Origin: Selaginella moellendorffii
Taxonomy: Eukaryota > Plantae > Lycopodiophyta
Length of the DNA stretch: 64,000 nt
Reading direction: 5' to 3'
Assembly: GCF_000143415.4 (NCBI RefSeq)
Contig: NW_003314430.1
Span: 1 to 64,000 of the forward strand
Positions 14,716 to 55,943 of the stretch are shown here, one piece after another; the first letter of the stretch is position 1; each line of letters opens with the position of its first letter. Both the position numbers and the translations under genes were made by a program. Below the pieces are notes generated by a model. It was not told the origin of the DNA and did no database searches. It saw only the letters and a program-made list of their open reading frames with translations.

Positions 14716-14736
14716 AAGTTCTATTAGTTGTCTGAT

Positions 14737-14808: not shown

Positions 14809-14868
14809 AGATTAATCAATTGGATTTATAAGTAATAACAAAACCATAACAATTTATTTAAGGTATTT

Positions 14869-15912
14869 CTATGCATGCATTTGCTGAAAGGGACAACGTA
14901 ATCCTCCATCGTAGTATGGTCCAATCTTGCCGGATTTCAGCACTCCCAGCTCCGCCAGCTTGTATCCCTTCTCAAATGCTGGTGGCCGATACACATTCAC
15001 GTTGAGCTGCCGGTACTCTTCCGGATTGGCAGCGGGATTAGGACACCAGTCCACCTCAATGCTGCCCTTCGCATCCTCCACACGTCTGGGAGGCATAAAT
15101 GCGGACACGCAGCTCCCGGCCAGCAGCTTGAACGCACCCAAGATGATCCACTCCACGATCACGGGGGGCTTTTCCAATCCAACAGCGCTCCTGATTGTGG
15201 GATCGATGAGCGCGCAGATCCCAGTCTCTACCAGCGGCTGCACGGGCTGAGGAAACGCGTCCAGCACCAGATGCTTGAGATCCTGGACGATGCTCTTGTT
15301 CTTGTCCGTGAAGATGGCGTTCTTGGCCTCGTACTCGCGAATGTACTCTCGCATCTCGGAAATGCTGTCTGGGATGTTTGTGATGCCCATCCTCACGCCC
15401 ACGTCGTGCCACACAACATACGCGGCCTCCTTCTCGTTGTCGGTCCACTTGCGGAATCCAAACTTCTCGGAGAAATCAATGGGACTGATCACGTTGAGGC
15501 AGAGGACGTAGGCGAATTGGTCGTTTGGGATCTTGAATTTGTTGTGGATTCCATTCAATCTCCTCACCGCGTACGAGCCGCGATCGCTGTCGACGTGGTG
15601 GTGGATCATCTCGCTCACCAGAATGTTGGTCTCGGCAGCGCGCTTCTCGGGATCCTTGAGGCCGTACTTGGTCTTGAAGAGCAGATTTGTGATCCCGGGG
15701 ATGCCCAGCGTGCGGATGGTGCCAAACTCGAGCGCCTTTTGTGAGAGGAAGGGGAATTCCACCGAGTACATATACCACAAGATCTTGTGGGCATCTCTCA
15801 CGGGGTGGAGTGACGCTAGAAATCTCGCTCTCTCTTTTCTCTTGCCAATGCACACCATCTTCCATGCTGCAGCCATCACGAGCAACACGATCGTCAACAA
15901 GATTGCAGCCAT
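14869..15912 (-). CDS. MpaB/DUF2236 family (rubber-oxygenase/Lcp-like) membrane-anchored oxygenase, copy 1
   Basis: 347-aa intronless ORF with an N-terminal hydrophobic anchor and motifs EFPF..KALEFG.IRT.GIP.I..LL, KR..ET, RLNGIH, I.ND.F.YVL, R.WTD.E..A....W..VG.RMGI. TATA box at 16007-16013. Confidence 0.85.
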   Translation of the reverse strand: MAAILLTIVLLVMAAAWKMVCIGKRKERARFLASLHPVRDAHKILWYMYSVEFPFLSQKALEFGTIRTLGIPGITNLLFKTKYGLKDPEKRAAETNILVSEMIHHHVDSDRGSYAVRRLNGIHNKFKIPNDQFAYVLCLNVISPIDFSEKFGFRKWTDNEKEAAYVVWHDVGVRMGITNIPDSISEMREYIREYEAKNAIFTDKNKSIVQDLKHLVLDAFPQPVQPLVETGICALIDPTIRSAVGLEKPPVIVEWIILGAFKLLAGSCVSAFMPPRRVEDAKGSIEVDWCPNPAANPEEYRQLNVNVYRPPAFEKGYKLAELGVLKSGKIGPYYDGGLRCPFQQMHA

Positions 15913-16385
15913 TCTGAAATGGTTGCGTTGTGAAAACTGTTTGATCTAAAATCTGTGCGTGCAAAAGAAAGAACTAGGTTGGTGAAACATGGGCAAGAGA
16001 AGGGGTATTTATACCAGTGATCCAACAGAGATCACATTTCACGTTTTCTATTCATGTAGCACTAACGTGCACGCTGTTTGATCTGTGCTTTCTTTCAGCC
16101 ACACACTTAACATCAATCAAAAAATCTATAGTCCCCTTATTGTACGTTTACAACATGTGGTCTATGCAATTTTTGGGTCACAAGTACACTCTATTTATTG
16201 TGGTTCAGGGTGATGCGCTCGCGAGATTCTGCGCACGAACACAGCTCAGGTGATGTGCTGGTATGCACGTAACCAGTATGTCCCATAAGTTGCACGTTTT
16301 CCATTCCATGCCGGTCCTACGAAAACCTTTACACATCCTTGTTTATGATGCACAATTCAACGACAAATCACTTGCAAGCTTATAC

Positions 16386-16558
16386 TATTGGAGATGTACG
16401 CTCCCCATAACATGAGAGGTCTACATGGCATGTGGTGCTACCACATAGATCCATGTAGGCTAGAGAGAGTCACGACTCTTGAGATTGTATATGTAGAGGT
16501 ATGATGATATCTGAGTATATCCATTCATCGTCCACTATGCTTCCACTTGTTTACGACA
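16386..16558. mobile_element. Solo-LTR-like insertion upstream of oxygenase copy 1
   Basis: 173 bp with TATTGG..CGACA ends and 5-bp TSD TATAC (16381-16385 and 16559-16563). Absent from the paralogous sites at ~13120 and ~20165. Confidence 0.75.
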
Positions 16559-16670
16559 TATACTTCAGTAAGACCACCTGAAAAGAATAACATTGCCTAA
16601 CCCTTAGCATGCGATCGTTTTTTATCTACCTGGTTTGTTTACAGTCCATTTGTGCCCAATGGAGGATGCA

Positions 16671-16870
16671 ATCTTGTAGTATCTGGTGAGTATTTCCACC
16701 TGTCACCCTGGCTACTGTGCAATTTTATCTTGCATCTCAAATGTTGAATGGCAGATACTAGCTTCTGGGATTGGCAGCAGGAGTGGAACTGCCCTTGGCA
16801 TCCTCGACATTTTTACCAGCAGCTTGAACTGATTCCAGTCCACAATCACCCAGGGCTTTTCCAATGGGAT
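16671..16870 (+). pseudogene. Decayed tRNA-Asp half plus collapsed antisense oxygenase fragments
   Basis: Same module as 12849-13039; retains the CCAGCAGCTTGAAC block matching 15120-15133. Confidence 0.75.
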
Positions 16871-18039
16871 TGCCACAATAGGGTCTCCCCAAGCAAAACA
16901 ATTGCCAAACTTTTTCTTTCTCTGTCTTTGAATCTATTATCTCAAAGGTCTCCAGCCCATATGTTCGGCAGTCAGTTCTTTGCTTGATTGTCCACTAATA
17001 ATGAATTATTATTCACTTTACTGGTTTCATAACGGTCTAGAGAGAGAGTAGCCTCAGCCATGTGTAGCCTGGGCATCTTCCACGTCCACGTCCTTGACCT
17101 CCTGTTCGCGGACCGGGCATCGCCGGTCTGCCCAGGCCGTCACCACGCTCCGATTACGCTATGGAGATTGTGCATCTCTGGTCAGTATCTCGAAGCGTTT
17201 CTAGCCGAGTGGGTTGTAGACTGGAGGCCCGATTGTTCGAGTGATGTTTACATTGGTGAGAGATAGTATTGGAATTTTGTCTTGCGATCTGCGCCACATA
17301 GCCAGCTTTTGAATGCCAGGCTGATCCAGCTATCGGGGACAGTGGTAACTGGTTGCTGGAGGAGAGTGTCCAGATCGACGTTAAGTTTCTTTGTCCGTCG
17401 CCTACAGTCATACCACCAGCCGGTGTTGTGACTGTCTGCGAGCAACTGGGAGTCTTGAATTGCCACACACACACAGTGTCTCTGCGGGCGGTTAGGAGGA
17501 ATTGGAGTGTGTCTCTCCACGCCAGGATTTCTGTTGGCATGAGACCTGTGTCCATGCATAGCAGTCCATATGGGAATTGGTTACAGAGCCCGAATTCCGG
17601 GCACCAATACAGGAGGATCAGGGGTGCTGTAATGTGTGCGTCGCAGATCTGTCGCATCCCATCGATATATGTTCGCGTTTCGCAGACTTGCCAAAAGTTG
17701 ACGGTGTGCTCGTTGAGCAGCAGCAAGCTTAGTGTGCACTTCTACCTTCTAAGGACGTTGCTGATGCAGGGTGATGCTTGTACTGTGTTGCTCTTGTGAC
17801 ATCATGGCCTGAATATAACAGGGGGCGGGGGGGGGGGGGCCCTTCCCGAAAGCCAGCAGCTCTGTGTCAGAGTGTACTTGTGACCCAAAAATTGCATAGA
17901 CCACACGTTGTAAAAACGTACAATAAGGGGACTATAGATTTTTTTATTGTGTGGCTGAAAGAATGCACAGATCAAACAGCGTGCACGTTAGTGCTCCATG
18001 AATAAAAAATGTGAAATGTGATCTCTGTTGGATCACTGG

Positions 18040-18046
18040 TATAAAT
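18040..18046 (+). promoter_or_regulatory. TATA box of oxygenase copy 2
   Basis: TATAAAT ~100 nt upstream of the ATG, conserved in all three intact copies and changed to GATAAAT in the three truncated copies. Confidence 0.6.
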
Positions 18047-18140
18047 ACCCCTTCTCTTGCCCATGTTTCACCAACCTAGTTCTTTCTTTTGCACGCACAG
18101 ATTTTAGATCAAACAGTTTTCACAACGCAACCATTTCAGA

Positions 18141-19184
18141 ATGGCTGCAATCTTGTTGATGATCGTGTTGCTCGTGATGGCTGCAGCATGGAAGATGGTG
18201 TGCATTGGCAAGAGAAAAGAGAGAGCGAGATTTCTAGCATCACTCCACCCCGTGAGAGATGCCCACAAGATCTTGTGGTATATGTACTCGGTGGAATTCC
18301 CCTTCCTCTCACAAAAGGCGCTCGAGTTTGGCACCATCCGCACGCTGGGCATCCCCGGGATCACAAATCTGCTCTTCAAGACCAAGTACGGCCTCAAGGA
18401 TCCCGAGAAGCGCGCTGCCGAGACCAACATTCTGGTGAGCGAGATGATCCACCACCACGTCGACAGCGATCGCGGCTCGTACGCGGTGAGGAGATTGAAT
18501 GGAATCCACAACAAATTCAAGATCCCAAACGACCAATTCGCCTACGTCCTCTGCCTCAACGTGATCAGTCCCATTGATTTCTCGGAGAAGTTTGGATTCC
18601 GCAAGTGGACCGACAACGAGAAGGAGGCCGCGTATGTTGTGTGGCACGACGTGGGCGTGAGGATGGGCATCACAAACATCCCAGACAGCATTTCCGAGAT
18701 GCGAGAGTACATTCGCGAGTACGAGGCCAAGAACGCCATCTTCACGGACAAGAACAAGAGCATCGTCCAGGATCTCAAGCATCTGGTGCTGGACGCGTTT
18801 CCTCAGCCCGTGCAGCCGCTGGTAGAGACTGGGATCTGCGCGCTCATCGATCCCACAATCAGGAGCGCTGTTGGATTGGAAAAGCCCCCCGTGATCGTGG
18901 AGTGGATCATCTTGGGTGCGTTCAAGCTGCTGGCCGGGAGCTGCGTGTCCGCATTTATGCCTCCCAGACGTGTGGAGGATGCGAAGGGCAGCATTGAGGT
19001 GGACTGGTGTCCCAATCCCGCTGCCAATCCGGAAGAGTACCGGCAGCTCAACGTGAATGTGTATCGGCCACCAGCATTTGAGAAGGGATACAAGCTGGCG
19101 GAGCTGGGAGTGCTGAAATCCGGCAAGATTGGACCATACTACGATGGAGGATTACGTTGTCCCTTTCAGCAAATGCATGCATAG
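18141..19184 (+). CDS. MpaB/DUF2236 family oxygenase, copy 2
   Basis: 347 aa; differs from copy 1 only at residue 7 (M vs T). Confidence 0.85.
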   Translation: MAAILLMIVLLVMAAAWKMVCIGKRKERARFLASLHPVRDAHKILWYMYSVEFPFLSQKALEFGTIRTLGIPGITNLLFKTKYGLKDPEKRAAETNILVSEMIHHHVDSDRGSYAVRRLNGIHNKFKIPNDQFAYVLCLNVISPIDFSEKFGFRKWTDNEKEAAYVVWHDVGVRMGITNIPDSISEMREYIREYEAKNAIFTDKNKSIVQDLKHLVLDAFPQPVQPLVETGICALIDPTIRSAVGLEKPPVIVEWIILGAFKLLAGSCVSAFMPPRRVEDAKGSIEVDWCPNPAANPEEYRQLNVNVYRPPAFEKGYKLAELGVLKSGKIGPYYDGGLRCPFQQMHA

Positions 19185-19271
19185 AAATACCTTAAGTAAA
19201 GTTTTGTTATTACTTATTAATCCAATTGATCAAATAAAGTTTATAATTATAAGCATGTTTGCTCGTAATCT

Positions 19272-19343
19272 CGCCGTTGCCGGGGATCGAACCCGGGTCG
19301 TCCGCGTGACAGGCGGAAATACTCACCACTATACTACAACGAC
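19272..19343 (-). tRNA. tRNA-Asp(GTC), intact
   Basis: Reverse complement GTCGTTGTAGTATAGTGGTGAGTATTTCCGCCTGTCACGCGGACGACCCGGGTTCGATCCCCGGCAACGGCG; all stems pair. Confidence 0.96.
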
Positions 19344-19479
19344 ATCAGACAACGAATACAAAGGAAGAATTTGTATCAAGCCATTGTTTAATTGCTGAAT
19401 AGACATTTTAATACTTGATAGATTTCGTGAACTTAATATGTGTTTAAATGATTTTCTATGTCCTCCTAATGAAATTTCA

Positions 19480-20015
19480 CGAATCCACGATGGAATGTCC
19501 ATTGGTGGCTCCGGAAATGTCTGCACAGCTCTTGGGGATGACAAAAACTCCAACTCCGAGTGAGTTCCAAAGTCTTGGCCTCTTACATGACCTTCGCATA
19601 GATATCCTGCAGCAGTAGCTCAAGTAGCACAAAGCAGAGAAAACGAAAACGAACTTTACCTCGCGCAAGCTGGCTTTAATCGGTGTAGGAGCTATGACCA
19701 CACCTGGAGATTCATGCGTCTTTTGTGAGAGGAAGGGGAATTCCACCCAGTACATATACCACAAGATCTTGTGGGCATGTCTCATGGGGTGGAGTGACGC
19801 TAGAGATCTCGCTCTATCTTTTCTCTTGCCAATGCACACCATCTTCCAGCCATCATGAGCAACACGGTCATCAACAAGATTGCAGCCATTTGGAAATGAA
19901 AACTGTTTGATCGGTCCTGAAAACAGCTTTTGCTTTCTACACTCCTCTGTGGGTTATGAAACAGGGGCAGGAGAAGAGGTATTTATCCTACAGAGATCAC
20001 ATCTCACATTTTTAA
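19480..20015 (-). pseudogene. Truncated chimeric oxygenase copy (inverted relative to copy 2)
   Basis: ATG at 19889, oxygenase homology to ~19717, then the same foreign tail as 13590-13820. Confidence 0.88.
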
Positions 20016-20269
20016 TTCCATGGTTCACCATATGTTATTCCGTGCACGTAACCAGTATGTCCCATAAGTTGCACGTTTTCCATTAGCTGGTCCATGCTGG
20101 TCCTACCAAAACGTTTACACATCCTTGTTTACAATGCGCAAGTCAACGACAAATCACTTGCAAGCCTAAGACTGCCCAAAAAGAATAACATTGCCGAACC
20201 CTTAGCATGCTTTTTTACCTGGTTATCTACCTGGTTTGTTTACAGTCCATTTGTGCCCAATGGGGTGCA

Positions 20270-20460
20270 ATCTTGTAGTATCTGGTGAGTATTTCCACCT
20301 GTCACCCTAGCTACTGTGCAATTTTTCCTTGCATCTCAAATGTTGATTGGTAGATACACATTAATGGGGCAGTGGGAGTGGGACTGCCCTTGGCATCCTC
20401 CACATTTCTACCATGAACTGATTCCACTCCACAATCACCCAGGGCTTTTCCAATGGGATC
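20270..20460 (+). pseudogene. Decayed tRNA-Asp half plus collapsed antisense oxygenase fragments
   Basis: Same module as 16671-16870. Confidence 0.75.
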
Positions 20461-23413
20461 GCCACCACTGGAGCCAATCCCCAAGGAAAACAATTGCCAA
20501 ACTTTTTCTTTCTCTGTGTTTGAATCTATTATCTCGAAGGTCTCCAGCCCATTTGTTTCACCAGTCAGTTCTTGGATTGTCTCACAAATTCATGATCCAC
20601 TAATAATGAACTGTTGTGATTTTCTCCTTTTAAAATTTTCTCTAATCCGTTGCTAATTAAAGTTTAATATTATTATTCTTAATTATCACTAATAAAAATC
20701 ATGTTATTCTTAGGCCCTCTTTCTCAACAATTATAATTGAACTTTTGCCTCTACTTTTCAGTATCTTGCTCAGATGCAACTTCTACCTAAGTAAGAAACT
20801 ATACAATATTTCTGGCCACTAGAGCTTAGTCTAAAGCTTCAACCATAAAGGCACTTCTTGTTAAAATATTTCTAGTAAAATGTTTTATTTTATTAAAAAA
20901 TTTAAATAATTTTTTTTTAAAAATAATAAAGCATTATTTTCCAAAAACAATTATTACTACATAGCATAGCAAATTATCCTACAAGACTCTAAATTGTTAC
21001 CTAGGGGACTGCTAAATATGCCCTTAGTGCCCCCAGAACAACTAAGCATTTGGGCCTATACTACACAAATTCTAAGGATATAACTCAAGAGTTATTGTGT
21101 GATGGGGAGGCATATAAAATATCATCCTCTAGAAGCCTTCAATGTATGCTACAAGGTTAAAGAGGCTAGAGTAATAATAACCAAACTCTTTATGTAATCT
21201 CTTGGATTATTTTAAAGGAGTTTTTAGCTTCAAACCAATTATGTAGCCATACAATTTTTGAACTATACTCAAAATAAGGTATTGCTAGCTAGTAGTCTTC
21301 TCAAAGACAAGGAGAGTAAAAACATTGATAAAAGTGAGAGAGGGTGTAATCAAGATAAGAAAGTAATAGTAGGTGTTTGTTAGTTTTTTTTGGAGCTGGA
21401 TCTAAATAAGATTTTAACTCCATCCCAATGTAGTGTTGTCACAGTTGATACCCATGTCCAAGATATGCCTATCATAGACAATGGCAGTGAGAGTGGTGCT
21501 GTAAAAAAGCTTGACGAACAGGTGTTGTTATCTTGCTCAAGCTCACAAAGCTCATGAATGGAGAAATCCTTGTGCATGAAATTTCCAATCCAATCCCTAT
21601 ATCTCTATCTAGATTTGAACATCAACTAACCTGTGGTTACCCCATTTGAAACTTCAGTAATCTCTTACCTGTTAATTTTGCACACCACTTTATTATGAAA
21701 GCTCTTGTAGAGCGTGGTTATGGCACTGGAGAGAATGCCTATTTCCAGGCTCTAATATGGCTTTTAAAAACTCTTTTCACCAAGACAAGAATCTGTATAT
21801 TAGGATATTGCTCTAGTGGTATGGCTATTTATCACCCTAGTCCCATTTGAGCATATCATGGATGGGGACTTTCAAGTGCAACATGATAGTTTGTGTGCTT
21901 TATGAGTCAAAAAGCTAAACTTTAAACATACAACTCTCCAAGTACATTAGGAAGCTCAATGATATGTAGCTAGGTGGTCTTCTAAAATATATATATAAGT
22001 TTTAAGGTTTATTTAAAAAGGTTTATAAGGTGGCATTTCATAAAGAAAACATAGCTTTTAGTTGATTAAAGAGGATATTAAATGATTCTAGTATATGGTC
22101 TAAATATAAAAGGAAAGAGTCTATAAACAAAATGCACCCCTTTTTCAATTGGTTAAAAGTATTATGAGATTTGGGTTAAGCGTCTTTGGTTTTGAATAAT
22201 GCTAGATTGGGTTACCTCATGGGGTTGGGGTTGTATTACTTGTAACTTTATGCTCTCCTATACTTCAATACAGGTAGAGTAAAGTAATTGTAACTTTGGG
22301 CTCTCTTATACCTCAATACAGGTAGAGTAAGGTGATTGAGCTTAACTTTGGGCTCTCTTATACTTCAATATAGGTAGAGTAAGGTGATTAAGCATATATT
22401 CAATGAGCATTATTATATTGAACTCTTATACAAAAAATAGAGAGTGTAGAATATAAAAATCTCATTGCTTTTTATAAGTTTTATTTAATTGATAAATCTT
22501 TTAACAATATTTTTCCATATACCTCATTGAGCTTTTCTATCTTTGAAAGAATCAACATCTATTTGTATTATCTATGGTTCTCACTAAGAAGATAAAAAAA
22601 ATTGCACTTAAGATCCAAAGAGCAAGTAGAGTTTATAGGCTTATAAGTTTAATTCTTTTCTTCCCCCTTTTTAATCTTTAGATCGATTTTTGCTCTTGAA
22701 TTTCCCCTAGAACATATGTTAAATTCATAACATGTGGATTACCAAGTTTGACTTGGATATTTTTGCATCAAAGTTGGTTATCCTTTAGATTGAATAATAA
22801 TTTAAAGGTCTTTGGGGTATTGGAGATTGGTTGAGGATTAGATAAATGGAAAATTTATCAACTAACTATGTATAATAACTTGGTGCTTTTATACTATTTA
22901 TGCTGTATAGTTTTTGATTTAGCTTTTAAAAATCTTATTTTAAAGATGAAATTTAATGGTTGAACGTATTTGAGAAATTTTATGCACAACCACCTAGTGA
23001 GCTAGAAATATTTAACAAATCAAGCATAGAAATGGATGAAATTAGGGAAGTTCAACCACTTTTGAATGATTATGAAAGATTTTTTGTTAAAAAGATCTAA
23101 TTAATATCAAGGCAAAAAGTTTCAAAGTAAATACTAAACATTATGTGTTTTTTTCTTTTTTTGTTACTTTTAATATACAAACTTCATGCAAAGGTTTTGC
23201 TCTAGAGTTTATTGGGTTTTTAATTCAACCATGTTTTCCCCATAATGTAAATTAGATGAAGTGATCTAGACACCAAACAATTTATGCATGAGGTGCAAAG
23301 TGATCAGCTAATAAGAAAAGGTAAAAAATACTTTTTCATTTTACTTTTATTGTTTATTCTACCTGGTTATCTACCTGGTTTGTTTACAGTCCATTTGTGC
23401 CCAATGGGGTGCA

Positions 23414-23600
23414 ATCTTGTAGTATCTGGTGAGTATTTCCAGCTGTCACCCTAGCTACTGTGCAATTTTTCCTTGCATCTCCAATGTTGAATGGCAGATA
23501 CACATTATCTATGGGAATGGGACTGCCCTTGGCATCCTCTACATTTCTACCATGAACTGATTCCATTCCAAATCACCCAGGGCTTTTCCAATGGGATTGC
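23414..23600 (+). pseudogene. Decayed tRNA-Asp half plus collapsed antisense oxygenase fragments
   Basis: Same module, at the head of the second tandem unit. Confidence 0.72.
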
Positions 23601-26600
23601 CACCATTGGGTCTCTGGAGCCAATCCCCGAGCAAAAAAATTGCGAAACTTTTTCTTTCTCTGTGTTTGAATCTATTATCCCAAAGATTTCCAGCCCATAT
23701 GTTTCACCAGTCAGTTCTTTGTTTTACAGGCATTTGTGACAAATGGATTGTCTCACAAATTCATGACCCACTAATAATGAACTGTTGTGATTTTCTCCTT
23801 TTAAAAATTTCTCTACTCCATTGCTAATTAAATTTTAATATAATTATTCTTAATTATCACTAATATAAATCATGTTATTCTTAGGCTTTCCTGTACTCCT
23901 CTTTCTCAACAATTATAATTGAACTTTTGCCTCTACATTTCAGTATCTTGCTCATATGCAACTTCTACATAAAGAATTAGAGTAAGGAACCATACAATAT
24001 TTCTGGCCACTAAAGCTTAGTCTAAAGCTTCAACCATAAAGGCACTGCTTGTTAAATATTGGACATGGTTATATTAAACTCAATCATTAAATTTCATTAA
24101 ATAATATTATAAATACAGGATAATATAGCACATTCCTTTATATTAAAGATTTATTACTTATTATTTATTTATAATGAAATTTTTAATTTAATTTAATTAT
24201 AATTTTATATAGTTATTAAAATATTTCTAGTAAATTTTTTATTTTATTGAAAAATTTAAATAAGTTTTTTAAAATAAAATAAAGCATTATTTCCCAAAAA
24301 CAATTAGTACTACATAGTGTAGCAAATTATCCTACAAGAATCTAAATTGTCACCTAAGGGACTACTAAATATGCCCTTAATGCCTCCAGAACAACTAAGC
24401 ATTTGGGTCTATACTACACAAATTCTAAGGATATAACTCAAGAGTTATTGTGTAGTGTATTGGGATGGGGAGGCATAAAAAATACCATCCTTTAGAGGTC
24501 TTTGATGTATGCTATAAGGTTAAAGAGGCTAGAGTAATAGTAATTAATAACTCTTTATATAATCTCTTAGAGCTTTTTAAAGGAGTTTTTAGCTTCAAAC
24601 CAATTATGCAACTATACAATTTTTGAACTGTACTCAAAATGAGGTATTGCTAGCTAATAGTCTTCTAAAAGATAAGGAGAGTAAAGACATTGATAAAAGT
24701 GACAGAGGGTGTAATAAGGATAAGAAAATAATAGTAGGTGCTTGTTAGTTTTTTTTGGAGCTAGATCTAAATAAGATTTTAACTCCATCCCAATGTAATA
24801 TTGTTGCAATTGGTACCCATGTCCAAGATATGCCTATCATAGCCAATGGCAGTGAGATTGGAGCTGAAAAAAAGCTTGATGAATAGATGTTGTTGTCCTG
24901 CTCAAGCTCACAAAGCTCATGAATGGAGAAATCTTTATGCATGAAATTTCCAATCCAATTCCTATATCTCTATCTAAATTTGAACCTCAACTAACCTGTG
25001 GTTGCCCCATTTGAAACTTCAATAATCTCTTACCTGTTAATTTTGCACACCACTTTATTATGAAAAATCTTGTAGAGCATGGTTATGGCACTGAAGAGAA
25101 TGCCTATTTCCAAGCTCTAATATGGTTTTCTAGAACCCTTTTCACCAGAACAAGAATCTGTATGCTAGGCTATTGCTCTAGTGGTATGGCTATTTATCAC
25201 CCTAGTCCCATTTGAGCATATCATGGATGGGGACTTTCAAGCACAACATGACAGTTTGTGTGCTTTATGACTCAAAAAGATAAACTTTAAACATACAGCT
25301 CTCCAAGTACATTAGGAAGCTTAATAATATGTAGCTAGATGGTCTTCTAAAATATATATAAGTTTTAGGGTTCATTTAAAAGGGTTTATAAGGTGGACTT
25401 TCATAAAGAAAACATGGCTTTTAGTTGATTAAAGAGGATTTTCTACACATATTAAATGATTCTAGTATACAGTCTAAATATAAAGGGAAAGAGTCTATAA
25501 ATAAAATGCACCCCTTTTTCAATTGGTTAAGAGTATTTGGTTTTGAATAATATTGGGTTGGGTTACCTCTTGGGGTTGGGGTTTTATTGCTTGTAACTTT
25601 AAGCTCTATTATACTTCAATACAGGTAGAGTAAGGTGATTGTAACTTTGGGCTCTCTTATACTTCAATATAGGTAGAGTAATGTGATTGAGCCTAACTTT
25701 AGGCTCTCCTATACTTCAATACAAGTAGAGTAAAGTGATTAAGCATATATTCAATAAGCATTATTATATTGAACTCTTATACAAAAAATAGAGAGTGTAG
25801 AATATTGAAATCTTATTGCTTTTTATAAGTTTTATTTAACTGCTAAATCTTTTAACAATCTTTTTCCATAGACCTTATTGAGATTTTCTATCTTTGAAAG
25901 AATCAATATCTATTTGTATTATTTATAGTTCTTACTAAGAAGATAAAACAAATTGCACTCAAGATCTAAAAAGCAAGTAGAGTTTATAGGCTTATAAGTC
26001 TAATTCTTCTCTTCCCCCTTTTTAATTTTTAGATCGATTTTTGCTCTTGAATTTCCCCTAGAATATATGTTAAATTCATAACAACATGTGGATTACCAAG
26101 TTTGACTTGGATATTTTACATCAAAGTTGGTTATCCTTCAGATTGAACAATTATTTAAAGGTCTTTAGGGTATTTGGAGATTGGCTGAGGATTAGATAAA
26201 TGGAAAATTTATCAATTAACTATGTATAATAACTTGGTGCTTTTATACTATTTATGCTGTATAGTTTTTGATTTAACTTTTAAAAATCTTAGTTTAAAGA
26301 TGAAATTTAATGGTTGAATGTATTTGAGAAATTTCATGCACAACCACCTAGTGAGCAAGAAAGATTTAACAAATCAAGCATAGAAATGGATGAAATTAGG
26401 GAAGTTCAACCACATTTGAATGATTATGAAAGATTTTTTGTTAAAAAACTCTAATGAATATTAAGGAAAAAAGTTTCAAAGTAAATACTAAATATTATGT
26501 GTTTTTTCTTTTTTTTTTGTTACTTTTAATATACAAACTTCATGCAAAGGTTTTGCTCTAGAGTTTATTGGGGTTTTCAATTTAACCATGTTTTCCCCAT

Positions 26601-32520: not shown

Positions 32521-32559
32521 AATGTTGAAATAGCATTTGGCTCCATTTTGAGAGTTGGT

Positions 32560-45590: not shown

Positions 45591-48500
45591 TCAAGAACGA
45601 GTGGAACGAGGATGTGAACGAGAACGAAGAGGAGGATGAGATGAGCGGCGAGGGATGGGAGATGGAGAAAAAGAATGAGGACTGGGACGAGAAGGATAGC
45701 GGCAGTGGAAGTCCTGAACAAGGTCAGGAGAATGAATCAGGTTGTCCGCAGGTTCCCAAGTGCGTTCCTCAGGTCCGTAACCCTTCCAGTCCACCAGATA
45801 GTAGAGTTTAGACCGTGAAATCTTGGAATCAAGGATGTCCTGAACCTCGTACTCAGACCCATCCTCGAGCTGCACTGGTGGAGGCGGAGGAATGACCCGA
45901 TTTGGAATAGGACTGGGAATATAAGGCTCAAGGAGAGAGGAGTGAAAAATGGGGTGAATTTGATATGAGGAGGGAAGTGCAAGGCGATAAGTGACAGGAT
46001 TAATGATGGCAGTGATAGGGAAAGGACCAAGGCGTTTGAAATCGAGTTTTGGACAGGGCCTGGTGGTGGAGATATTTCGCCTGAGGAGCCAGACTTTATC
46101 CCCGATATTGTAAGGGGGACAATCCTGACGATGGACATTGGCAAATGTTTTATGAGATTCCTGAGCACGATGGAGGTGGAAGGAGATGGAGTTGTGGATT
46201 TCCTGGAGGTTGGAGATAAATGCCTCAGAGCGGGGATTTGAATGAGAGGATTCAGATGGAGAAGGAAGTGAGAGATTGAATCAGGGATTTTGGCCAGAGT
46301 TTGCAAAGAAGGGGGAAACTCGAAGAGAGGAGTGAACAGAGTTGTTATAGGAGAACTCAGCAAGGGGAAGGATATCGAACCAGTTATCCTGATGATAGTT
46401 GATGAAGCACCTCAAGAATTGTTCCAACGTCTGAATCGTTCGCTCGGACTGCCCATCAGTTTGAGGATGATATGCCGAAGAGAGGTTGGCCTTCACTCCA
46501 AGCAGCTGCAAAAACCGTTGCCAGAAATGAGAGATGAACTGAGGCCCCCGATCCGAAACCACATCTGTAGGAATCCCATGAAGTCAGAAAATTTCCCTGA
46601 ATACCAGTTTTGCCATGTCCTCGCCCGAAAACTCCTTGGTACATGGCAAGAAGTGTGCCATCTTTGTGAAGCGATCCACCACGACTAAAATGCTGTTGAA
46701 GCCTCCAGAACTCGGAAGATCACTCAAGAAATCCATGGAGATGGATTCCCAAGGACCTGAAGGGACCGGAAGGGAACGAAGCAAACCTGAAGGAAGGTGG
46801 TGAGGTACCTTATTCCGGGCACAAGTGTCACAGGAGGTAACAAAAGCTTTGATGTAGTCGTCCATGTGAGGCCACCAAAAGTCCCGTGCAACTAGCTCAT
46901 AGGTTTTCGCAATGCCGAAGTGACCAGCAGTCGGGCTATCATGGCATGCCATCAGGACCAACCTTCGAGCATCACCTTCAGGAACGTAAAGCTACTCCCC
47001 ACGGTACAATAAGCCATCTAAGAACTCGAACTCGTCAAATTGCCGGCAGTCGGGAGTCATTGGGTGTCCAGCCTGAAGATGGGGGAAAATGTCGCTAGCG
47101 AGATCATCGGATTGAAGATCGTTTCTGATTGCATCCATCAAGGAGGAGTCCTGAGGGGCCAGGGAAATTGCCATAACGTGAAGCCGATCAGGACCGAGGA
47201 TAACTTGATCCTATTGATCGAAGGCAGGATTACCAGGCCTGAGACTGAGATAAGAGCGCCTTGAAAAAGCATTAGGAAGGCCTTGAAACTTTCCAGGTCT
47301 GTACTTGATAACAAAGTCAAACCGACTCAGGAATTGTGCCCACCTTGCTTGACGACGGCTTAAAACTCGGGAAGTGGCAAAGTACTCGAGATTTTTGTGA
47401 TCCGTCCAGACAGTTGTTTGATGGCTCGCCCCCTCCAAGAAACGGCGCCACTCTCCAAAGGAATCCACGATGGCAAGGAGCTCCTTGTCGTGGATTTCGT
47501 AATTGATCTCCGCAGGTTGGAATTTTCGAGAATGGAAAGCGACCGGATGAAGTTCGTGATCTGCTCCGAGTTGAGACAGCACAGCACCAATGGCAAAGTC
47601 GGAGGCGTCAGCCTTGATGAAGAAAGGTTGTGAGGAATCAGCATGGATCAAGACAGGAGCAGAACTGAAGGCTGCCTTGAGTGTGTCGAAGGCCTGCTGG
47701 GCAGCAGCAGACCAAGAGAAGGGAACATCCTTGCGAGTGAGATGTGTGAGAGGAAGGACAATGTCAAAGTAGTGATCAATGAATTTGCGGTAGAAGTTGG
47801 CGAAGCCAAGGAAAACCTGAACGTCCGACATTGATTGTGGAGGCTCCCATTCGAGAATAGTCTTGACTTTGGCAGGATCCATCGTGATACCCTCAGGAGT
47901 GACAATGTACCCAAGGAACTCCACAGACTGCTGATCAAAGGAACATTTCTCAAGCTTTGCGTATAGGCTGTGTTCTCGCAACTTCGCTAGCACCTTGCGT
48001 ACATGTCCGTCATGCTCCTCCTGAGTTTTTGAGTAGATGAGGATGTCATCGAGGTAGACGATCACCATCTGATCAAGAAACTCCCGAAAGACGTCGTTCG
48101 CCATGTGTTGGAAAACTGCTGGAGCATTTGTCAAGCCAAATGGCATGACAGTGTACTCGAAGTGGCCATAGCGGGTTCAGAACGCAGTCTTCCATTCATC
48201 ACCAGGCCGGATCTGGATCAGGTTGTATGCTCCACGGAGGTCAATCTTGGTGAAGAAGCGGGCACCGCCGAGGCGTTCCAACAGGTCCGAGATCAGGGGC
48301 AGCGGATAACGGTTCCGAACAGTCACCTTGTTCAAACCTCGGTAGTCGATGACTAACCGCAAGCTCCCATCCTTCTTCTTGACAAAGAAGACAGGCACTC
48401 CAGCCGGGGACTGCGAATGCTGAATGTAGCCCGAGGCAAGGTTCTCATCCACGTACTCTTTGAGGGCCTTAAGCTCAGACGGGGATAACCCGTAGATAGG

Positions 48501-49349
48501 CCCCCACGGAGGTGACGCTCCTTCCTGTAAATCAATGGGACAATCATAAGGCCGATGAACAGGCAGTACACTAGCTTTTTTCTTGTCAAACACATCCCCA
48601 AAATCATGATACTTCTCAGGAAGACTGACAGGAGAAACATGCAAAGCAAAAAGAAAAAGAGGTTCTTCATGAAGGAGTTCTTTCATAGTGATTGTGGAGA
48701 TAGGAGGAGGCGTACGACTAAATGGAATGATGAGACGAGGATACGGTCCAGTGTAAGATGGAAGAGAGGAAAAAGAAGAGGGTGAAAACTTTATAGAGTC
48801 AGGAATAGAACCCCAATTTGAGTTTAGGGAACTTTTCCTGATTCGGACTCGATGAACAGCAGGGGAAGCCGTGGGAGAGATGAGCTGTAATTCCTTCCAA
48901 CAGATCTGAGGCTGATGTAGTTGGAACCATGGAAGACCGAGCACCACAGAGGAGGACTTGCTGTTGATGATGTTGAAGGCGATATCGGTGACAGTGGACC
49001 CGATGTGTACTCGAACTGGCAACGTTTCCCTAAGTCCAGAAGATGGAGACACAAAATGCCCGCCGATGCCTTCAACCCTCAAATCCCGTATGGTAGGAGA
49101 AAGAGGAACGTGATGTCGGGCAGCAAAGTCCGTGTCCATGAAGCAGGAAGTTGCACCTGAGTCCAGTAACGCCAAAGCCTTGAGTCCTGATTGTCCGGTG
49201 AAAGAAAGGAGACATGGGACGCGGAAGTTGCGGGAATTGGTGGTGGCTTTGATGAAAGGTGGTGAGGAGCTTGATAAAGAAGAAAAGTGATTTTTATTCG
49301 GGGAGTCCAAACAGACAACTCCTACTTTGTTTGGACAGGGTCGTTTCCC
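45591..49349 (-). pseudogene. pol of nested element (PR, RT, RNase H, integrase, chromodomain); single frame with five nonsense codons
   Basis: LLDSGAT, YLDD, ADASD, H2C2, SDRGPQF, GPF and YEVQDIL..VDWKGY..TWEP all lie in the same frame. Confidence 0.92.
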
Positions 49350-50299
49350 GACTGCAATAGAGGTGGACTTTGAGGCAGAGTGAACTCGAGCAGTCGAGGA
49401 GGCTTCTTGGGACATACAGCTGCTTTGTGATTAGGATCAGCACAATAGAGGCAAAGATTATGAGATATTCGACGTTGCTTCTCAGCAGGACTCAACTTCC
49501 CTCTAATGAGTCGGGGAGTACCAGAAATATCCATCGGAACCGGAGTAGTAGGTTCAGGAGTATGCCCCGAAGACTCAAGCTGGGATTCCTGAGTCTGGGA
49601 CGGAAAAACAGCGGCGCGGCGACTTTCCTGACGACGTTCAAAGAGACGATTGTCACATCGAACAGCTTTGTTGATGGCATCCGACAGGTCCTTGGGATCC
49701 TCCATGGTGAGCAACAAATCCTTGACACCGTTGTTGAGGCCGAAACGAAATTGGTCAATCAGGGCTCGCTCATCCCACTGAGTGTCCAAGGCAAGGAGTT
49801 GGAACTCTGCAGCGTAGATTGAGGCAGGACGAGACCCTTGAGAGAGCCGTCTCATCTTTGTGGTAGCAGCCCGAACCTGATCCGTCTCGCCAAAACATAC
49901 TTCGAGCTTCTCTTTGAACAATTGAAGATCCATTAGCTCCGGAACCACGACCCCTTTCATGCTCTTCTCCAGAAGAGGAGAAAACCATGACAAAGCTGCA
50001 CCCTCGAGCAATGTCCCAATCGCGCCGATTTGAGACTCGGGAGTGGGGTACCGCCGATGTTGAAGTGCAAAGATCAGCTCCATTTGGTTCAAAAATCCAC
50101 GAAGCTCCAAACGCTTGCCTGAAAATTTCGCCGGGAAACTCACCTTCGGTTCAGGAACTTTGCTGGATCCTTGAGCCGAAAGTGAAGCAAGCTCCTGCTG
50201 CATGCGAAGAAGGGTCGCCTTCAGCTCGGTATTCTCAGACTGGATTTTTGCAAGGACTTCGGCAAAGAAATCAGGATGGCTTGGAGACTCCATTGGCAA
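49322..50299 (-). CDS. Gag of nested element (intact ORF, PEG10/Ty3-like capsid plus CCHC knuckle)
   Basis: 325 aa with P.KFSG, FRFGL..VKD.L, PVPMDI and [15 protein letters not shown]. Confidence 0.9.
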
Positions 50300-53200
50300 G
50301 AAGAAAGAAAAGAAAGGGGGAAAAAGACAAAGGCAATCAAATAATCAAAACAAGCTAAAAGAAAAGCAAAAACCACAATCTGAATCAAACTGTCAAGACC
50401 CCCAACAAGATCAAGACTGGAAAATGCTAAAGACAAAGAGAAAAAGCTAGTGAAAACAAAGAAGAAGCCTTAGACTGGTGTTGATTCAGATTGTGGAGAA
50501 ATGGAACAAGGCTAACCTATATATACTATAGGTTGATGAAGCTCCACCACTCTTGGATCGAGGACGGCCTAAATATAGCTGAGGTCGAGGAGGCACCACA
50601 TCATCATCAGGAATGTGGCTCGAGACTCAGGAATCGGGAGTGTCTCGAGAGTCAGGAATAGGGAAGTGTCTCGAGAGTCAGGAATGTGGTCTGCAGGTCA
50701 GGAATCCGGCGAAAGTCAGGAATGTGGCAAAAATTGGGGGATTCCTGACAATCAATGGGCGAGCTATTGAAGGTCCTATGGAACTCAGCATGGCCGAGTA
50801 TCATGAAGAGTTACCCACAGTGGAGGCATTCATGGCGGAAAGACTCAACATTTGGAATCTAGTGAGGGATTCCTTAGAACGGGCTCAACAAAGGCAAATC
50901 AAGTATGCAAACCAAAAGCGTCGGGACGTAGAGTTCCAACCTGGGGAGAAGGTGTGGTTGAACACCAAGAACCTAAGGTTACCAAGTGGGATCAGTCGGA
51001 AGTTGACGCAAAAGTGAGATGCATGTATTCTTAGAAATGAGTTGATCTTGAGTTCTTTAAGCAGGTTCGTGGGGCCTTCCGAGATTGAGGCACAAATTGG
51101 TAAAGTGGCTTACCGCCTCTGACTTCCTTGAGAGATGGGGAAGATGCACCTAGTGTTCCATGTGAACCTACTCAAGCCGTACTTTGAGGATCTGCTTCGT
51201 AAGGACCAAATGAGATCTTTACCTAAGGTTATCCAAAGGGAAGAGGAATACGAAGTGGAGGCCATCCTCAATACACGCAAGAGCAAGCGACAAGGATGTG
51301 AGGTGAGAGAGTTCCATGTGAAGTGGAAAGGATTTCCATATTGCGAAGCAACATGGGAACCGAAGGAGAACCTAGCGAATGCACGAGATCTAGTGGAGGA
51401 ATTTCTGCAAGGCAGAACTCTATGTACTTATGCAAAGTTCAATTAAAGTATCAATTTGTGAAGTTGAGCAATGACATATATTGGGACCCAAAGGCGCGCT
51501 AAAGGTAAGCTAATTAGCATGGGTTAGCTAGGTCGACCAGGCGTAAAGAACTATGCTCGACTCCCCACAGGGATGTCGAATCCGTAGACGTATTCTAGGG
51601 AGGTTGGGTTCAAATCCCAACGCCCTAGTAAAGCAAGGCTAGGTTCAAGTCCCAACCCCATACTAGGGCGTGGTGGGGTGAGGGGTATAGGGACACCTAT
51701 ATTTCGTAGTCATGGGCTCTTGGCCAAGGAGGTTAACTTAAGCACACTGCTAAATGGGGGGATGCCCCTGAAAACATGGTCAATAAGTCGTAAGATAAAA
51801 AGAGACGTTCGATGAGGGCATCGAACTTCTTCTATGGGTAGTGGAGTTGTAAGGAACCAACTCCCCGAGGTGTCGTAGGCTAAAGGATCCCCAAAAACAT
51901 GACCAACATGACAGAGAGTTCATCGGATGGAACTCTCTAGTGGTGCTTCCAAACTGACTTGAGGTTGAGACTGGGGCTGAGTGGCCTTGGGTGGGAGTGA
52001 GCATGGACTCGGGTGGTGCCGGAGGGGCCACCCAAGGAAGTGCTGAAGAGCAGCTTCCACTCCCAAAAGGGAAACCAACTACGGTACTCTCGACTCATAT
52101 GGAGTGGTGCCCCACTTAAGTACCTTGTGGCTCATTGGTCCTCACCCTTCCTAGGGGCTTGGACCTTCCCTTTGGGATGGAAGTGGTGTGGGGGGGGGGT
52201 TAGAGGCCATACTGGGCCATTAGGCCATGGTGTTTCGCCCTGGCATCCCAAAGCATGTGTTGCACCCAAAGCTTGGGATTTAGAGGGTCCTATAATCAAG
52301 TCTTGTGGTACCAAGGGATATTAAGGACCTGGAGGTTTGGTGTGCTTGGCTGCTTATGCATGCGAGGAGTGTAGCCAAACCTTAAATCTAGTCTAACTCG
52401 GGGAGGGGGATTGGGAGAGATTTGGGAATCCGTGGATGGATGGCTAATGCTCTGTTGCTCGTGCAGTAAGTAGCTAAAACCAAGTAGGACCAAGTAGAAG
52501 CTGATACCATAGGCGGGAACCTTGGCGAGGGAATTTAGTTAAAGCCAAGGCAGTGTTAGTCGGACAGACGAGGTAAATTGGCAAATTGGAAAGGAAAATT
52601 TTGTGGTTTACACCCTATTTCAGTATATTGGTGGCTTAATGCTAAGATATGGGTATTCCACTAACTAACATGGTATAGAGATTAGGCTTAGACCCAAGCC
52701 AAAAGCAGAATAAAAATAGACATGCAACTAAAAGGTAGACTATACCTTAATAATTTACCCATTATCTTTACTACACATTTGGAAACTATTGTTTTTCCCT
52801 ACCTCAGAAGAATGTTAAGTCTAATATTTACTTTCAGAGAGATTCACAATTGAAGTGTATGTGAAGTCCTCAAGATGGTTGATTATAATGGAAAAGGCTA
52901 TATGAAAAAAGCAATAAAATGAGAATAAAAAAGGGACCTTAACTAATGTTTGTAAAACATAACCTAAAACCAAAGCCAAAATCATTTGGATTAAATCAAG
53001 TAAAGTCAATAGATCAAGGTTTTTTAAAAAGTAAAGAATAGATAAAAGATACAATAGAATCTTTTATCATTTCTTTCTAATTTTTCTGTTCTTAGGCCTT
53101 GCTCTAGGCATGATCTCCACAGCTTGCAATCGCAAATCAGCTCGCAGCCTTGCACTTCTCTACAAGACACAGCTGCTCCCTGGCATGAGCCAGAATGATC

Positions 53201-53616
53201 ACCATTTTATCTAAGAAAGTCTGAGTGGGGAGGGCCTTTTTGAAAAGTTCTGCCCTAGCACTGTCCTTGCTGTTCTTGCTCGAGATCCCAGGCAGGAGCA
53301 TTTGAAAATGCCTCTCACAGGAGCTCCATGGATTGCTTCTCCTCCTCGTCCATGGCTGTCGATTAGTCCAGGTTTTGTGGTGTCACAGAGGGCAAGCCAG
53401 GGATATTTGGCACTTCTGAGAAAATCACAATAGTTCATTATTAGTGAGTCATGAATTTGTGAGACAATCCATTTGTCATGAATGTGTGTAAAATAAAGAA
53501 CTGACTGGTGAAGCATATGGGCTGGAGACCTTCGAGATAATAGATTCAAACGCAGAGAAAGAAAAAGTTTGGCAATTGTTTTGCTCGGGGATTGGCTCCA
53601 GAGACCCAATGGTGGC

Positions 53617-53801
53617 GATCCCATTGGAAAAGCCCTGGGTGATTTGGAGTGGAATCAGTTCATGGTAGAAATGTAGAGGATGCCAAGGGCAGTCCCATTC
53701 CCGCAGATAATGTGTATCTGCCATTCAACATTGGAGATGCAAGGAAAAATTGCACAGTAGCCAGGGTGACAGGTGGAAATACTCACCAGATACTACAAGA
53801 T
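53617..53801 (-). pseudogene. Decayed tRNA-Asp half plus collapsed antisense oxygenase fragments
   Basis: Same module; closest to the 23414 copy. Confidence 0.72.
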
Positions 53802-54059
53802 TTCACCCTATTGGGCACAAATGGACTGTAAACAAAACAGGTAGATAACCAGGTAGATAAGCATGCTAAGGGTTAGGCAATGTTATTCTTTTTGGGTGGT
53901 CTTACGCTTGCAAGTGATTTGTCGTTGACTTGCACATTGTAAACAAGGATGTGTAAACGTTTTGGTAGGACCAGCATGGACCAGCTAATGGAAACCGTGC
54001 AACTTATGGGACATACTGGTTACGTGCATGGAATAACATACGGTGAACCATGGAATTAA

Positions 54060-54600
54060 AAATGTGAGATGTGATCTCTGTCGGATAAATACCTCTTCTC
54101 CTGCCCCTGTTTCATAACCCACAGAGGAGTGTAGAAAACAAAAGCTGTTTTCAGGACCGATCAAACAGTTTTCATTTCCAAATGGCTGCAATCTTGTTGA
54201 TGACCGTGTTGCTCATGATGGCTGGAAGATGGTGTGCATTGGCAAGAGAAAAGATAGAGCGAGATTTCTAGTGTCACTCCACCCCGTGAGAGATGCCCAC
54301 AAGATCTTGTGGTATATGTACTGGGTGGAACTCCCCTTCCTCTCACAAAAGACGCTCGAGTTTGGCACCATTCATATCTTGGTTAGTTTGTGCCAACATG
54401 AATCTCCAGGTGTGGTCATAGCTCCTACACTGATCAAAGCCAGCTTGCGCGAGGTAAAAGTTCGTTTTCCTCTGCTTTGTGCTACTTGAGCTACTGCTGC
54501 AGGATATCTATGTGAAGGTCATGTAAGAGGCCAAGACTTTGGAACTCACTCGGAGGTGGAGTTTTTGTCATCCCCAAGAGCTGTGCAGATGTTTCCTGAG
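54060..54600 (+). pseudogene. Truncated chimeric oxygenase copy (inverted relative to copy 3)
   Basis: ATG at 54182, oxygenase homology to ~54371, then the foreign tail. Confidence 0.88.
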
Positions 54601-54732
54601 CCGACAGTCCATGAAATTCACTTTAGGAGGACATAGAAATCATTTAAACATATATTCAACTGACGAAATCTCTATCAAGTATTAAAATGTCTGTTCAGCA
54701 ATTAAGCAATTCCTTTCTATTAGTTGTTTGAT

Positions 54733-54804
54733 GTCGTTGTAGTATAGTGGTGAGTATTTCCGCCTGTCACGCGGACGACCTGGGTTCGATCCCCGGCAAC
54801 GGCG
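54733..54804 (+). tRNA. tRNA-Asp(GTC)
   Basis: 72-nt cloverleaf with one G:U in the T stem. Confidence 0.94.
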
Positions 54805-54899
54805 AGATTATGAGCAAACATGCTTATAATTATAAACTTTATTTGATCAATTGGATTAATAAGTAATAACAAAACCATAACAATTTATTTAAGGTATTT

Positions 54900-55943
54900 C
54901 TATGCATGCATTTGCTGAAAGGGACAACGTAATCCCCCATCGTAGTATGGTCCAATCTTGCCGGATTTCAGCACTCCCAGCTCCGCCAGCTTGTATCCCT
55001 TCTCAAATGCTGATGGCCGATACACATTCACGTTGAGCTGCCGGTACTCTTCCGGATTGGCAGCGGGATTAGGACACCAGTCCACCTCAATGCTGCCCTT
55101 CGCATCCTCCACACGTCTGGGAGGCATAAATGCGGACACGCAGCTCCCGGCCAGCAGCTTGAACGCACCCAAGATGATCCACTCCACGATCACGGGGGGC
55201 TTTTCCAATCCAACAGCGCTCCTGATTGTGGGATCGATGAGCGCGCAGATCCCAGTCTCTACCAGCGGCTGCACAGGCTGAGGAAACGCGTCCAGCACCA
55301 GATGCTTGAGATCCTGGACGATGCTCTTGTTCTTGTCCGTGAAGATGGCGTTCTTGGCCTCGTACTCGCGAATGTACTCTCGCATCTCGGAAATGCTGTC
55401 TGGGATGTTTGTGATGCCCATCCTCACGCCCACGTCGTGCCACACAACATACGCGGCCTCCTTCTCGTTGTCGGTCCACTTGCGGAATCCAAACTTCTCC
55501 GAGAAATCAATGGGACTGATCACGTTGAGGCAGAGGACGTAGGCGAATTGGTCGTTTGGGATCTTGAATTTGTTGTGGATTCCATTCAATCTCCTCACCG
55601 CGTACGAGCCGCGATCGCTGTCGACGTGGTGGTGGATCATCTCGCTCACCAGAATGTTGGTCTCGGCAGCGCGCTTCTCGGGATCCTTGAGGCCGTACTT
55701 GGTCTTGAAGAGCAGATTTGTGATCCCGGGGATGCCCAGCGTGCGGATGGTGCCAAACTCGAGCGCCTTTTGTGAGAGGAATGGGAATTCCACCGAGTAC
55801 ATATACCACAAGATCTTGTGGGCATCTCTCACGGGGTGGAGTGACGCTAGAAATCTCGCTCTCTCTTTTCTCTTGCCAATGCACACCATCTTCCATGCTA
55901 CAGCCATCACGAGCAACACGATCATCAACAAGATTGCAGCCAT
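54900..55943 (-). CDS. MpaB/DUF2236 family oxygenase, copy 3
   Basis: 347 aa; two substitutions relative to copy 2 (A15V and P to S in YRPSAF). TATA at 56038-56044. Confidence 0.85.
   Translation of the reverse strand: MAAILLMIVLLVMAVAWKMVCIGKRKERARFLASLHPVRDAHKILWYMYSVEFPFLSQKALEFGTIRTLGIPGITNLLFKTKYGLKDPEKRAAETNILVSEMIHHHVDSDRGSYAVRRLNGIHNKFKIPNDQFAYVLCLNVISPIDFSEKFGFRKWTDNEKEAAYVVWHDVGVRMGITNIPDSISEMREYIREYEAKNAIFTDKNKSIVQDLKHLVLDAFPQPVQPLVETGICALIDPTIRSAVGLEKPPVIVEWIILGAFKLLAGSCVSAFMPPRRVEDAKGSIEVDWCPNPAANPEEYRQLNVNVYRPSAFEKGYKLAELGVLKSGKIGPYYDGGLRCPFQQMHA

Follow-up and report, generated by a model that had tools for sequence, protein, structure and literature searches.

Is an oxygenase gene found in several nearly identical, intronless copies in a lycophyte a recent gift from a microbe, or is it a native plant gene? 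The question is raised by the first 64 kb of the 175-kb Selaginella moellendorffii scaffold GL377734.1 (this whole 64-kb stretch is referred to below as the window), which carries three genes for an MpaB-type oxygenase of the MpaB/TAO/Lcp family (Pfam PF09995). The MpaB/Lcp family is best known from fungi and bacteria, and the original prediction, made from the DNA sequence only, saw in these genes a horizontally acquired enzyme of microbial type. The evidence presented here indicates that they are very probably recently duplicated, functional, intronless and plant-resident genes of a haem-b-dependent oxygenase, which were inherited vertically in the green lineage, lost an intron and were amplified both tandemly and segmentally.

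Three intronless copies of the oxygenase gene

The window contains three complete, uninterrupted open reading frames (ORFs), each with a coding sequence (CDS) of 1044 nt. These are:

14869..15912, minus strand: copy 1, MpaB-type oxygenase gene, 347 amino acids, intronless (ORF; gene model with PF09995 called at locus L010, which is identical to positions 8141–29184 of the window)
18141..19184, plus strand: copy 2, MpaB-type oxygenase gene, 347 amino acids, intronless, used as the reference copy (ORF; Pfam PF09995)
54900..55943, minus strand: copy 3, MpaB-type oxygenase gene, 347 amino acids, intronless (ORF)

Across the three CDSs, 9 of the 1044 nucleotide positions are variable (six synonymous and three nonsynonymous changes, the latter being T7M, A15V and P311S), which confirms the earlier count of three differing residues in total. 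In copy 2 coordinates, the nine variable sites are 18160, 18184, 18239, 18302, 18584, 18809, 19013, 19071 and 19148. Copies 1 and 2 differ at 4 nucleotides (one nonsynonymous) and copy 3 differs from each of them at 7, the pairwise identities being 99.3–99.6%. The NCBI protein models of the same Selaginella cluster (identity of at least 90%) are also 347 amino acids long.

Family assignment, predicted fold and active site

The assignment to the MpaB/Lcp family was upheld by a hidden Markov model (HMM) search, in which residues 86–249 of the copy 2 protein matched Pfam PF09995 (MPAB_Lcp_cat, DUF2236) with 42.5 bits (cutoff 23) and an E-value of 1e-10; NCBIfam gave no match for the oxygenase protein. 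An AlphaFold (AF2) model based on a 123-sequence alignment reached a predicted local distance difference test score (pLDDT) of 89.6 and a predicted template modelling score (pTM) of 0.89, and was used in place of a discarded model based on 3 sequences only (pLDDT 41). The predicted structure has the all-helical globin-core fold with N- and C-terminal caps that marks the family. With this model, Foldseek found PDB entry 8s1j, the trans-anethole oxygenase (TAO) of Stenotrophomonas maltophilia, with template modelling (TM) scores of 0.63/0.72, and Lcp with a probability of 1.0. VIA gave Z 25.6 for TAO (286/300 residues aligned, root-mean-square deviation 3.2 Å), Z 17.8 for Lcp (245 aligned) and Z ~9–10 for globins; the proposed structural kinship to Lcp thus holds, with TAO as the better match.

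In the Lcp of strain K30 (LcpK30), Arg164 and Thr168 are the active-site residues of DUF2236 and His198 is the proximal haem ligand (PMC5522427). Their counterparts in the Selaginella protein are R91, T95 and H123, with the same spacing of 4 between Arg and Thr as in Lcp. R91 and H123 are the only invariant residues in the 123-member family alignment, and T95 is present in 122/123 sequences. The histidine of the RLNGIH motif is therefore retained, as had been stated, and in the HMM alignment to TAO the NGIH histidine pairs with that of NKIH, while KRAAET pairs with KRADDT. The sequence KRAAET indeed stands in place of the usual motif; the altered specificity that had been read from it is weakly founded, since the Arg and Thr are kept, A92 occurs in 13/123 and A93 in 8/123 family members, and TAO itself reads KRADDT. 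E94 is a conservative replacement of Asp (found in 118/123 relatives), and P0001, a 94%-identical copy, has Asp at position 94. On the basis of these alignments, KRAAET appears to be a mild variant of the consensus KRYDDT that gives no real ground for assuming a changed specificity. The presence of an N-terminal membrane anchor was supported as well: residues 4–22 are strongly hydrophobic (Kyte-Doolittle 19-mer mean of 2.64) and are followed by the basic stretch KRKERAR. A comparable N-terminal hydrophobic segment was seen in 47/123 relatives.

TAO is the closest structural match and the only sequence match in the PDB (E 1e-3), and shares the R-x-x-x-T and N-x-I-H motifs with the Selaginella protein. 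It differs in being bacterial and soluble, without an N-terminal membrane anchor; the identity is 18–19%, and the aryl-propene substrate is that of TAO. LcpK30 (PDB 5o1l/5o1m) has the same globin-core fold with caps and the conserved Arg/Thr/His triad, but is a secreted, rubber-cleaving actinobacterial enzyme with a distal Lys167 ligand, whereas the Selaginella protein is anchored and 13–14% identical to it. The possibility that the Selaginella protein is a rubber oxygenase Lcp proper was rejected: the equivalent of Lys167 (conserved in just 59% of Lcps; PMC5522427) is E94, and the N-terminus is a hydrophobic anchor with basic residues and no cleavable export signal.

Phylogenetic position

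An exhaustive search yielded 1328 relatives, few of which are recovered by word-index searches. Outside the Selaginella cluster, the closest proteins with a label come from the ferns Adiantum and Ceratopteris, and further green homologues are found in the conifer Cryptomeria japonica, in ferns (additional paralogues) and in the trebouxiophyte alga [Myrmecia] bisecta. Also labelled in this broad clade are fungi (chytrids, Basidiobolus, a yeast, Lobosporangium and a basidiomycete) and other eukaryotes (a choanoflagellate, a diatom, a cryptophyte, an amoebozoan and a heterolobosean), while the bacterial members form a clade of their own. Both careful trees were built from about 50 chosen sequences (labelled sequences and clade representatives) out of the best 150 matches. 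The second was calculated without the long-branch sequences P0151, P0007, P0099 and P0111 and without Gefionella (P0040), which fell near the plant clade in FastTree and inside the bacterial clade in IQ-TREE. Support values, given as ultrafast bootstrap/Shimodaira-Hasegawa-like approximate likelihood ratio test (IQ-TREE, LG+C20), were as follows:

99/96: vascular-plant clade
99/91: monophyly of the ferns
95/92: clade of vascular plants, the green alga and two unlabelled sequences
97/87: split of eukaryotes from bacteria

The earlier tree, which did not include the conifer, agrees with this topology.

These results bear on the proposal that a fungal or bacterial MpaB/Lcp gene recently entered the Selaginella lineage and was then amplified. 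Such a transfer would account for the missing introns, fits a family whose best known members are fungal and bacterial, and finds some backing in the chytrid fungi among the best labelled non-plant matches and in the lack of any angiosperm or bryophyte homologue among the labelled matches. Against it, the fern, conifer and algal homologues group with the Selaginella proteins (99/96 and 95/92), apart from fungi and bacteria, and the wider clade spans Heterolobosea, Amoebozoa, cryptophytes, diatoms, choanoflagellates and fungi. Neither a published plant member of the MpaB/Lcp family nor a report of its horizontal transfer was found in the literature.

A shared intron position

The structure of the related genes proved still more telling with regard to the transfer proposal. 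The [Myrmecia] bisecta gene lies beside a kinase gene on a scaffold of 10 Mb; it comprises 8 exons, and intron 4 interrupts codon W174 in phase 2. The Cryptomeria gene has one intron of 116 nt, in phase 2 inside K154, and the single-copy Selaginella paralogue P0002 (70% identical) has one GT-AG intron of 98 nt, in phase 2 inside E152. In the alignment, these three codons fall into a single column within a block free of gaps, and the invariant Arg154 follows four residues later. The corresponding site in the window is:

18588..18590, plus strand: codon K150 of copy 2, from which the ancestral phase-2 intron is missing (same column as E152 of P0002, K154 of Cryptomeria and W174 of [Myrmecia])

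The intron is precisely absent from all amplified copies that were inspected, i.e. the three in the window and seven in L004–L007. The fern genes (Adiantum, Ceratopteris) cover more DNA than their coding length, and introns in them were inferred from this comparison of gene span with protein length only.

Because this intron is common to an alga, a conifer and paralogue P0002, its absence from the window copies is secondary, the loss having occurred at codon K150. Taken together, the tree and the common intron imply that the gene was already present in the ancestor of green algae and land plants, or else that it arrived too long ago for the term "microbial type" to mean anything. The copies are not nested in a microbial donor clade, homologues do exist in related plants, and the ancestral intron is shared with them. 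The distribution across ferns, a conifer and a trebouxiophyte alga is essentially that of vertically inherited orthologues of green plants, the very pattern that the original prediction had named as its refutation, and the horizontal acquisition put forward in the original prediction is not supported. With an intron of identical position and phase in alga, conifer and paralogue, and an algal gene of 8 exons embedded in a large scaffold, recent transfer is extremely unlikely.

A very ancient transfer, from another eukaryote or a bacterium into an early ancestor of the green lineage, followed by vertical descent with many losses, is a different matter. It would be in keeping with the patchy distribution in plants (alga, lycophyte, ferns and one conifer), and the deep branches of the eukaryotic radiation are unresolved in our trees. 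However, bacteria and eukaryotes as a whole are split in the tree (97/87), and most eukaryotic supergroups have members of the family, so an old eukaryotic gene with repeated loss is the simpler explanation and no transfer is required. We therefore consider an ancient transfer distinctly unlikely.

How the intron was lost is a separate question. The intronless subfamily could descend from a retrogene, i.e. a reverse-transcribed mRNA that gained a promoter and was then amplified, rather than from a genomic deletion of the intron. The precise absence of one ancestral intron from the inspected amplified copies, with its retention in the single-copy 70% paralogue, speaks for this, as does the abundance of Ty3-type retroelements in the region. 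On the other hand, there was only one short intron to lose, which commonly happens by other routes, and the founding event is old (large synonymous divergence, dS, from the paralogue), so that a poly(A) tract or target-site duplications, which were not seen at the ends of the units (no search aimed at them was made), would have decayed. A retrogene origin appears less likely than not.

Duplicated segments within the window

Self-BLAST of the window placed copies 1 and 2 at the centres of an inverted duplication, 2.2 kb apart, and copy 3 in a further duplicated segment 36 kb away, past nested Ty3-type long terminal repeat (LTR) retroelements:

10233..16192: left arm of the inverted segmental duplication, with copy 1
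17869..23075: right arm of the inverted segmental duplication, with copy 2
53418..56996: third duplicated segment, with copy 3

The arms match at 10233–13573 against 23075–19716 (96.8%) and at 14722–16192 against 19358–17869 (96.1%). The right side corresponds to the copy 3 segment at 17072–17913 and 56996–56171 (94%), at 17982–19716 and 56102–54397 (95%), and at 19716–20595 and 54355–53476 (94%). The flanks of the copies are distinct, with 93–99% identity and indels, which marks the copies as individual recent duplicates rather than a threefold count of one sequence. To explain the high CDS identity, gene conversion need not be invoked, since several flanking stretches are as alike as the CDSs.

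The same data make it very unlikely that the three copies are an assembly artefact (collapsed or mis-joined haplotypes, or mis-assembled repeats). Such an artefact could be suspected from the 99.3–99.6% identity of the copies, from the position of the window at the beginning of its scaffold, and from the two haplotypes contained in the v1 assembly of S. moellendorffii. It does not explain the distinct flanks with indels, the inverted arrangement of the pair or the distant third copy beyond nested LTR retrotransposons. There are no runs of N in the 64-kb window, and the independent arrays present on other scaffolds show amplification to be general for this oxygenase gene.

Amplification and selection

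The original description of the gene as triplicated was accurate as to recent amplification and the three copies of the window, yet it gives a local view only, as the cluster of at least 90% identity comprises 22 distinct S. moellendorffii sequences at many loci, including several arrays. Scaffold GL377571.1 carries a head-to-tail array of at least 5 copies spaced at ~4.8–5.1 kb, and a further array is located on GL377654.1. A public gene model for the 347-residue product on GL377571.1 (L005, 10001–15663) spans 5.6 kb and is evidently an annotation artefact, in which parts of two adjacent array copies are joined by a false intron.

When the window copies are compared with the arrays on GL377571.1 and GL377654.1, dS is 0.21–0.25 and the ratio of nonsynonymous to synonymous divergence (dN/dS) is 0.10–0.13 (42–49 synonymous versus ~20 nonsynonymous differences), and within arrays dS is 0.01–0.04. 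The low dN/dS and dS values show that the copies are kept by purifying selection and that the latest duplications are very young.

Expression and weighing of the evidence

Several points weigh against the view of functional oxygenase genes vertically inherited in the green lineage and strongly amplified in Selaginella. Names could be attached, via three cluster look-ups, to ~45 of the best 150 matches (about one third). Among these labelled matches no member from bryophytes, streptophyte algae or angiosperms was seen, and vertical descent therefore needs several losses. The branching inside the plant clade, with Cryptomeria outside Selaginella plus ferns, conflicts with the species tree, though the nodes concerned are weakly supported (95/72, 92/71). 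As two haplotypes are present in the v1 assembly of S. moellendorffii, the count of 22 includes both for some of the sequences and overstates the haploid copy number. Haem binding, the use of O2 and the substrate are putative assignments by analogy with distant relatives, the identity to solved structures being 13–19%. Finally, zero reads mapped to the CDS in the ~12% that was read of each of two raw RNA-seq runs from 2026 labelled as the same species, and the older runs that do cover the gene (X1 and X15) were only guessed to be RNA.

Contigs of these older runs tile positions 18124–19120 colinearly and end at the ends of the gene, as an unspliced transcript would. They are colinear with the CDS without joints, which, along with the uninterrupted ORFs, agrees with the predicted absence of introns. 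Contig coverage in X15 begins at 18124, and a putative promoter element was noted upstream:

18040..18049, plus strand: TATA-like box ~100 nt upstream of the copy 2 ATG, inferred promoter (read from sequence)

The oxygenase gene is likely to be expressed in a condition-dependent manner.

Putative function and significance

The Selaginella copies are a new plant member of a known enzyme family. Besides TAO and LcpK30, the fungal MpaB' of the mycophenolic acid pathway, an enzyme that is bound to the endoplasmic reticulum (ER) and splits a farnesyl side chain at a C=C bond (10.1101/524025), was compared by its description. It belongs to the same Pfam family, is eukaryotic and is membrane-associated, in line with the N-terminal hydrophobic anchor of the Selaginella protein. 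The MpaB' gene is clustered with genes for a polyketide synthase and a prenyltransferase, whereas the Selaginella copies lie among retroelements, and the fungal sequences in our tree belong to clades other than that of Selaginella.

The N-terminal helix probably holds the protein on a membrane, by analogy with MpaB' possibly that of the ER, with the globin-like catalytic domain on the cytosolic side. His123 would bind haem b as its proximal ligand, Arg91 and Thr95 would be placed distally, and with O2 the enzyme would break a C=C bond of a lipophilic compound, for instance in a prenyl chain or an aryl-propene. Additional copies could raise the dosage of the enzyme. As to the history of the genes, one Selaginella subfamily would have lost the single ancestral intron and then spread by tandem and segmental duplication into several arrays.

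As a tentative and somewhat unlikely suggestion, the plant MpaB-type oxygenases (of lycophytes, ferns, conifers and some green algae, and apparently not of angiosperms) may be an uncharacterised class of membrane-anchored, haem-dependent, alkene-cleaving dioxygenases, and their amplification in Selaginella may mark an undescribed step of specialised metabolism, e.g. a reaction in which a prenylated phenolic, phenylpropene or polyprenol is cleaved. Were its substrate to be identified, the enzyme would stand beside the non-haem carotenoid cleavage dioxygenases as a second, haem-based means by which plants cleave C=C bonds oxidatively. For plant biochemistry this offers a small but genuine lead. 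The locus itself is an ordinary, if uncharacterised, lineage-specific expansion. The analysis removes one false candidate for microbe-to-plant gene transfer, and illustrates that a common intron position can quickly decide such a claim. Within the MpaB/TAO/Lcp haem oxygenases, it also brings to light a branch of the green lineage that apparently nobody has characterised, and which is kept in spore-bearing vascular plants and at least one conifer and, in Selaginella, is strongly amplified and under selection.

Genomic neighbourhood

No biosynthetic cluster with partner enzymes was found around the window copies, whose neighbours are retroelements, tRNA-Asp genes, a 3-hydroxyisobutyrate-dehydrogenase-like gene, a peroxidase gene fragment and an uncharacterised ORF. 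Next to the other arrays lie PPR, cupin and folate-receptor-like genes, and the neighbourhoods of the window copies, of these arrays and of a further unit on GL377696.1 (see below) gave no clue to a pathway. Each window copy is accompanied by a convergent tRNA-Asp gene:

14736..14809, plus strand: tRNA-Asp(GTC), 59 nt beyond the stop codon of copy 1, in convergent orientation (ARAGORN; Rfam tRNA 51.2 bits)
19271..19344, minus strand: tRNA-Asp(GTC), 86 nt beyond the stop codon of copy 2, in convergent orientation (ARAGORN; Rfam tRNA 59.5 bits)
54732..54805, plus strand: tRNA-Asp(GTC), 94 nt beyond the stop codon of copy 3, in convergent orientation (ARAGORN; Rfam tRNA 56.8 bits)

Compared with that of copy 2, the tRNA-Asp of copy 1 carries two substitutions, of which one affects the acceptor stem, and it scores lower in Rfam; between the gene and the tRNA of copy 1, 35 nt including an AATAAA are missing. 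A fourth unit of oxygenase gene and tRNA-Asp is present on GL377696.1 (tRNA at 11131–11204 of L011, minus strand), where it encodes a protein identical to that of copy 2 within a different gene neighbourhood. The inverted pair and the third copy in the window probably each moved with a tRNA-Asp gene. A tRNA-Asp gene does not go with every copy of the oxygenase gene: the association is limited to the three window units and the GL377696.1 unit, and none was found beside the GL377571.1 array, the GL377654.1 array or the paralogue P0002.

Positions 30558–32503 of the window are 93–97% identical to positions 11484–13551 of L011, part of a Methyltransf_29 gene region that directly follows the oxygenase and tRNA unit of GL377696.1. 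This stretch has no long ORF and is probably a decayed gene fragment carried in a larger segmental duplication; AT-rich repeats fill the ~10.8 kb between it and copy 2.

Copy 3 is adjoined by an apparently intronless gene (56945–58180, plus strand) for a protein resembling 3-hydroxyisobutyrate dehydrogenase or glyoxylate reductase (NAD_binding_2 and NAD_binding_11, E 1e-49). Further on, an ORF at 59138–60001 (plus strand) has a partial match to class III peroxidases (profile positions 90–157 of 237) and is presumably one exon of a spliced peroxidase gene. A tRNA-Gly called by ARAGORN at 59147–59216 was rejected, as Rfam gave no confirmation. Neither the 383-residue ORF at 60311–61462 (minus strand) nor the small ORFs around the oxygenase copies had a Pfam match.

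Ty3-type LTR retrotransposon material occupies positions 7605–10196 and 40653–52612, with LTR-like repeats at 7605–8285, 40653–41358 and 51926–52612. ORFs for Gag, protease and reverse transcriptase are located at 41418–44089, and a second element lies in reverse orientation at 47211–50299; the retroelements at 40653–52612 appear to be nested. The left arm of the inverted duplication terminates at a Ty3-type element. Beside the right arm there is an AT-rich (28–31% GC) tandem duplication of ~2.5 kb (20858–23362 and 24213–26719, 91% identity), and a dispersed repeat of ~430 bp recurs at ~12.7, 16.6, 20.2, 23.4 and 53.5 kb.

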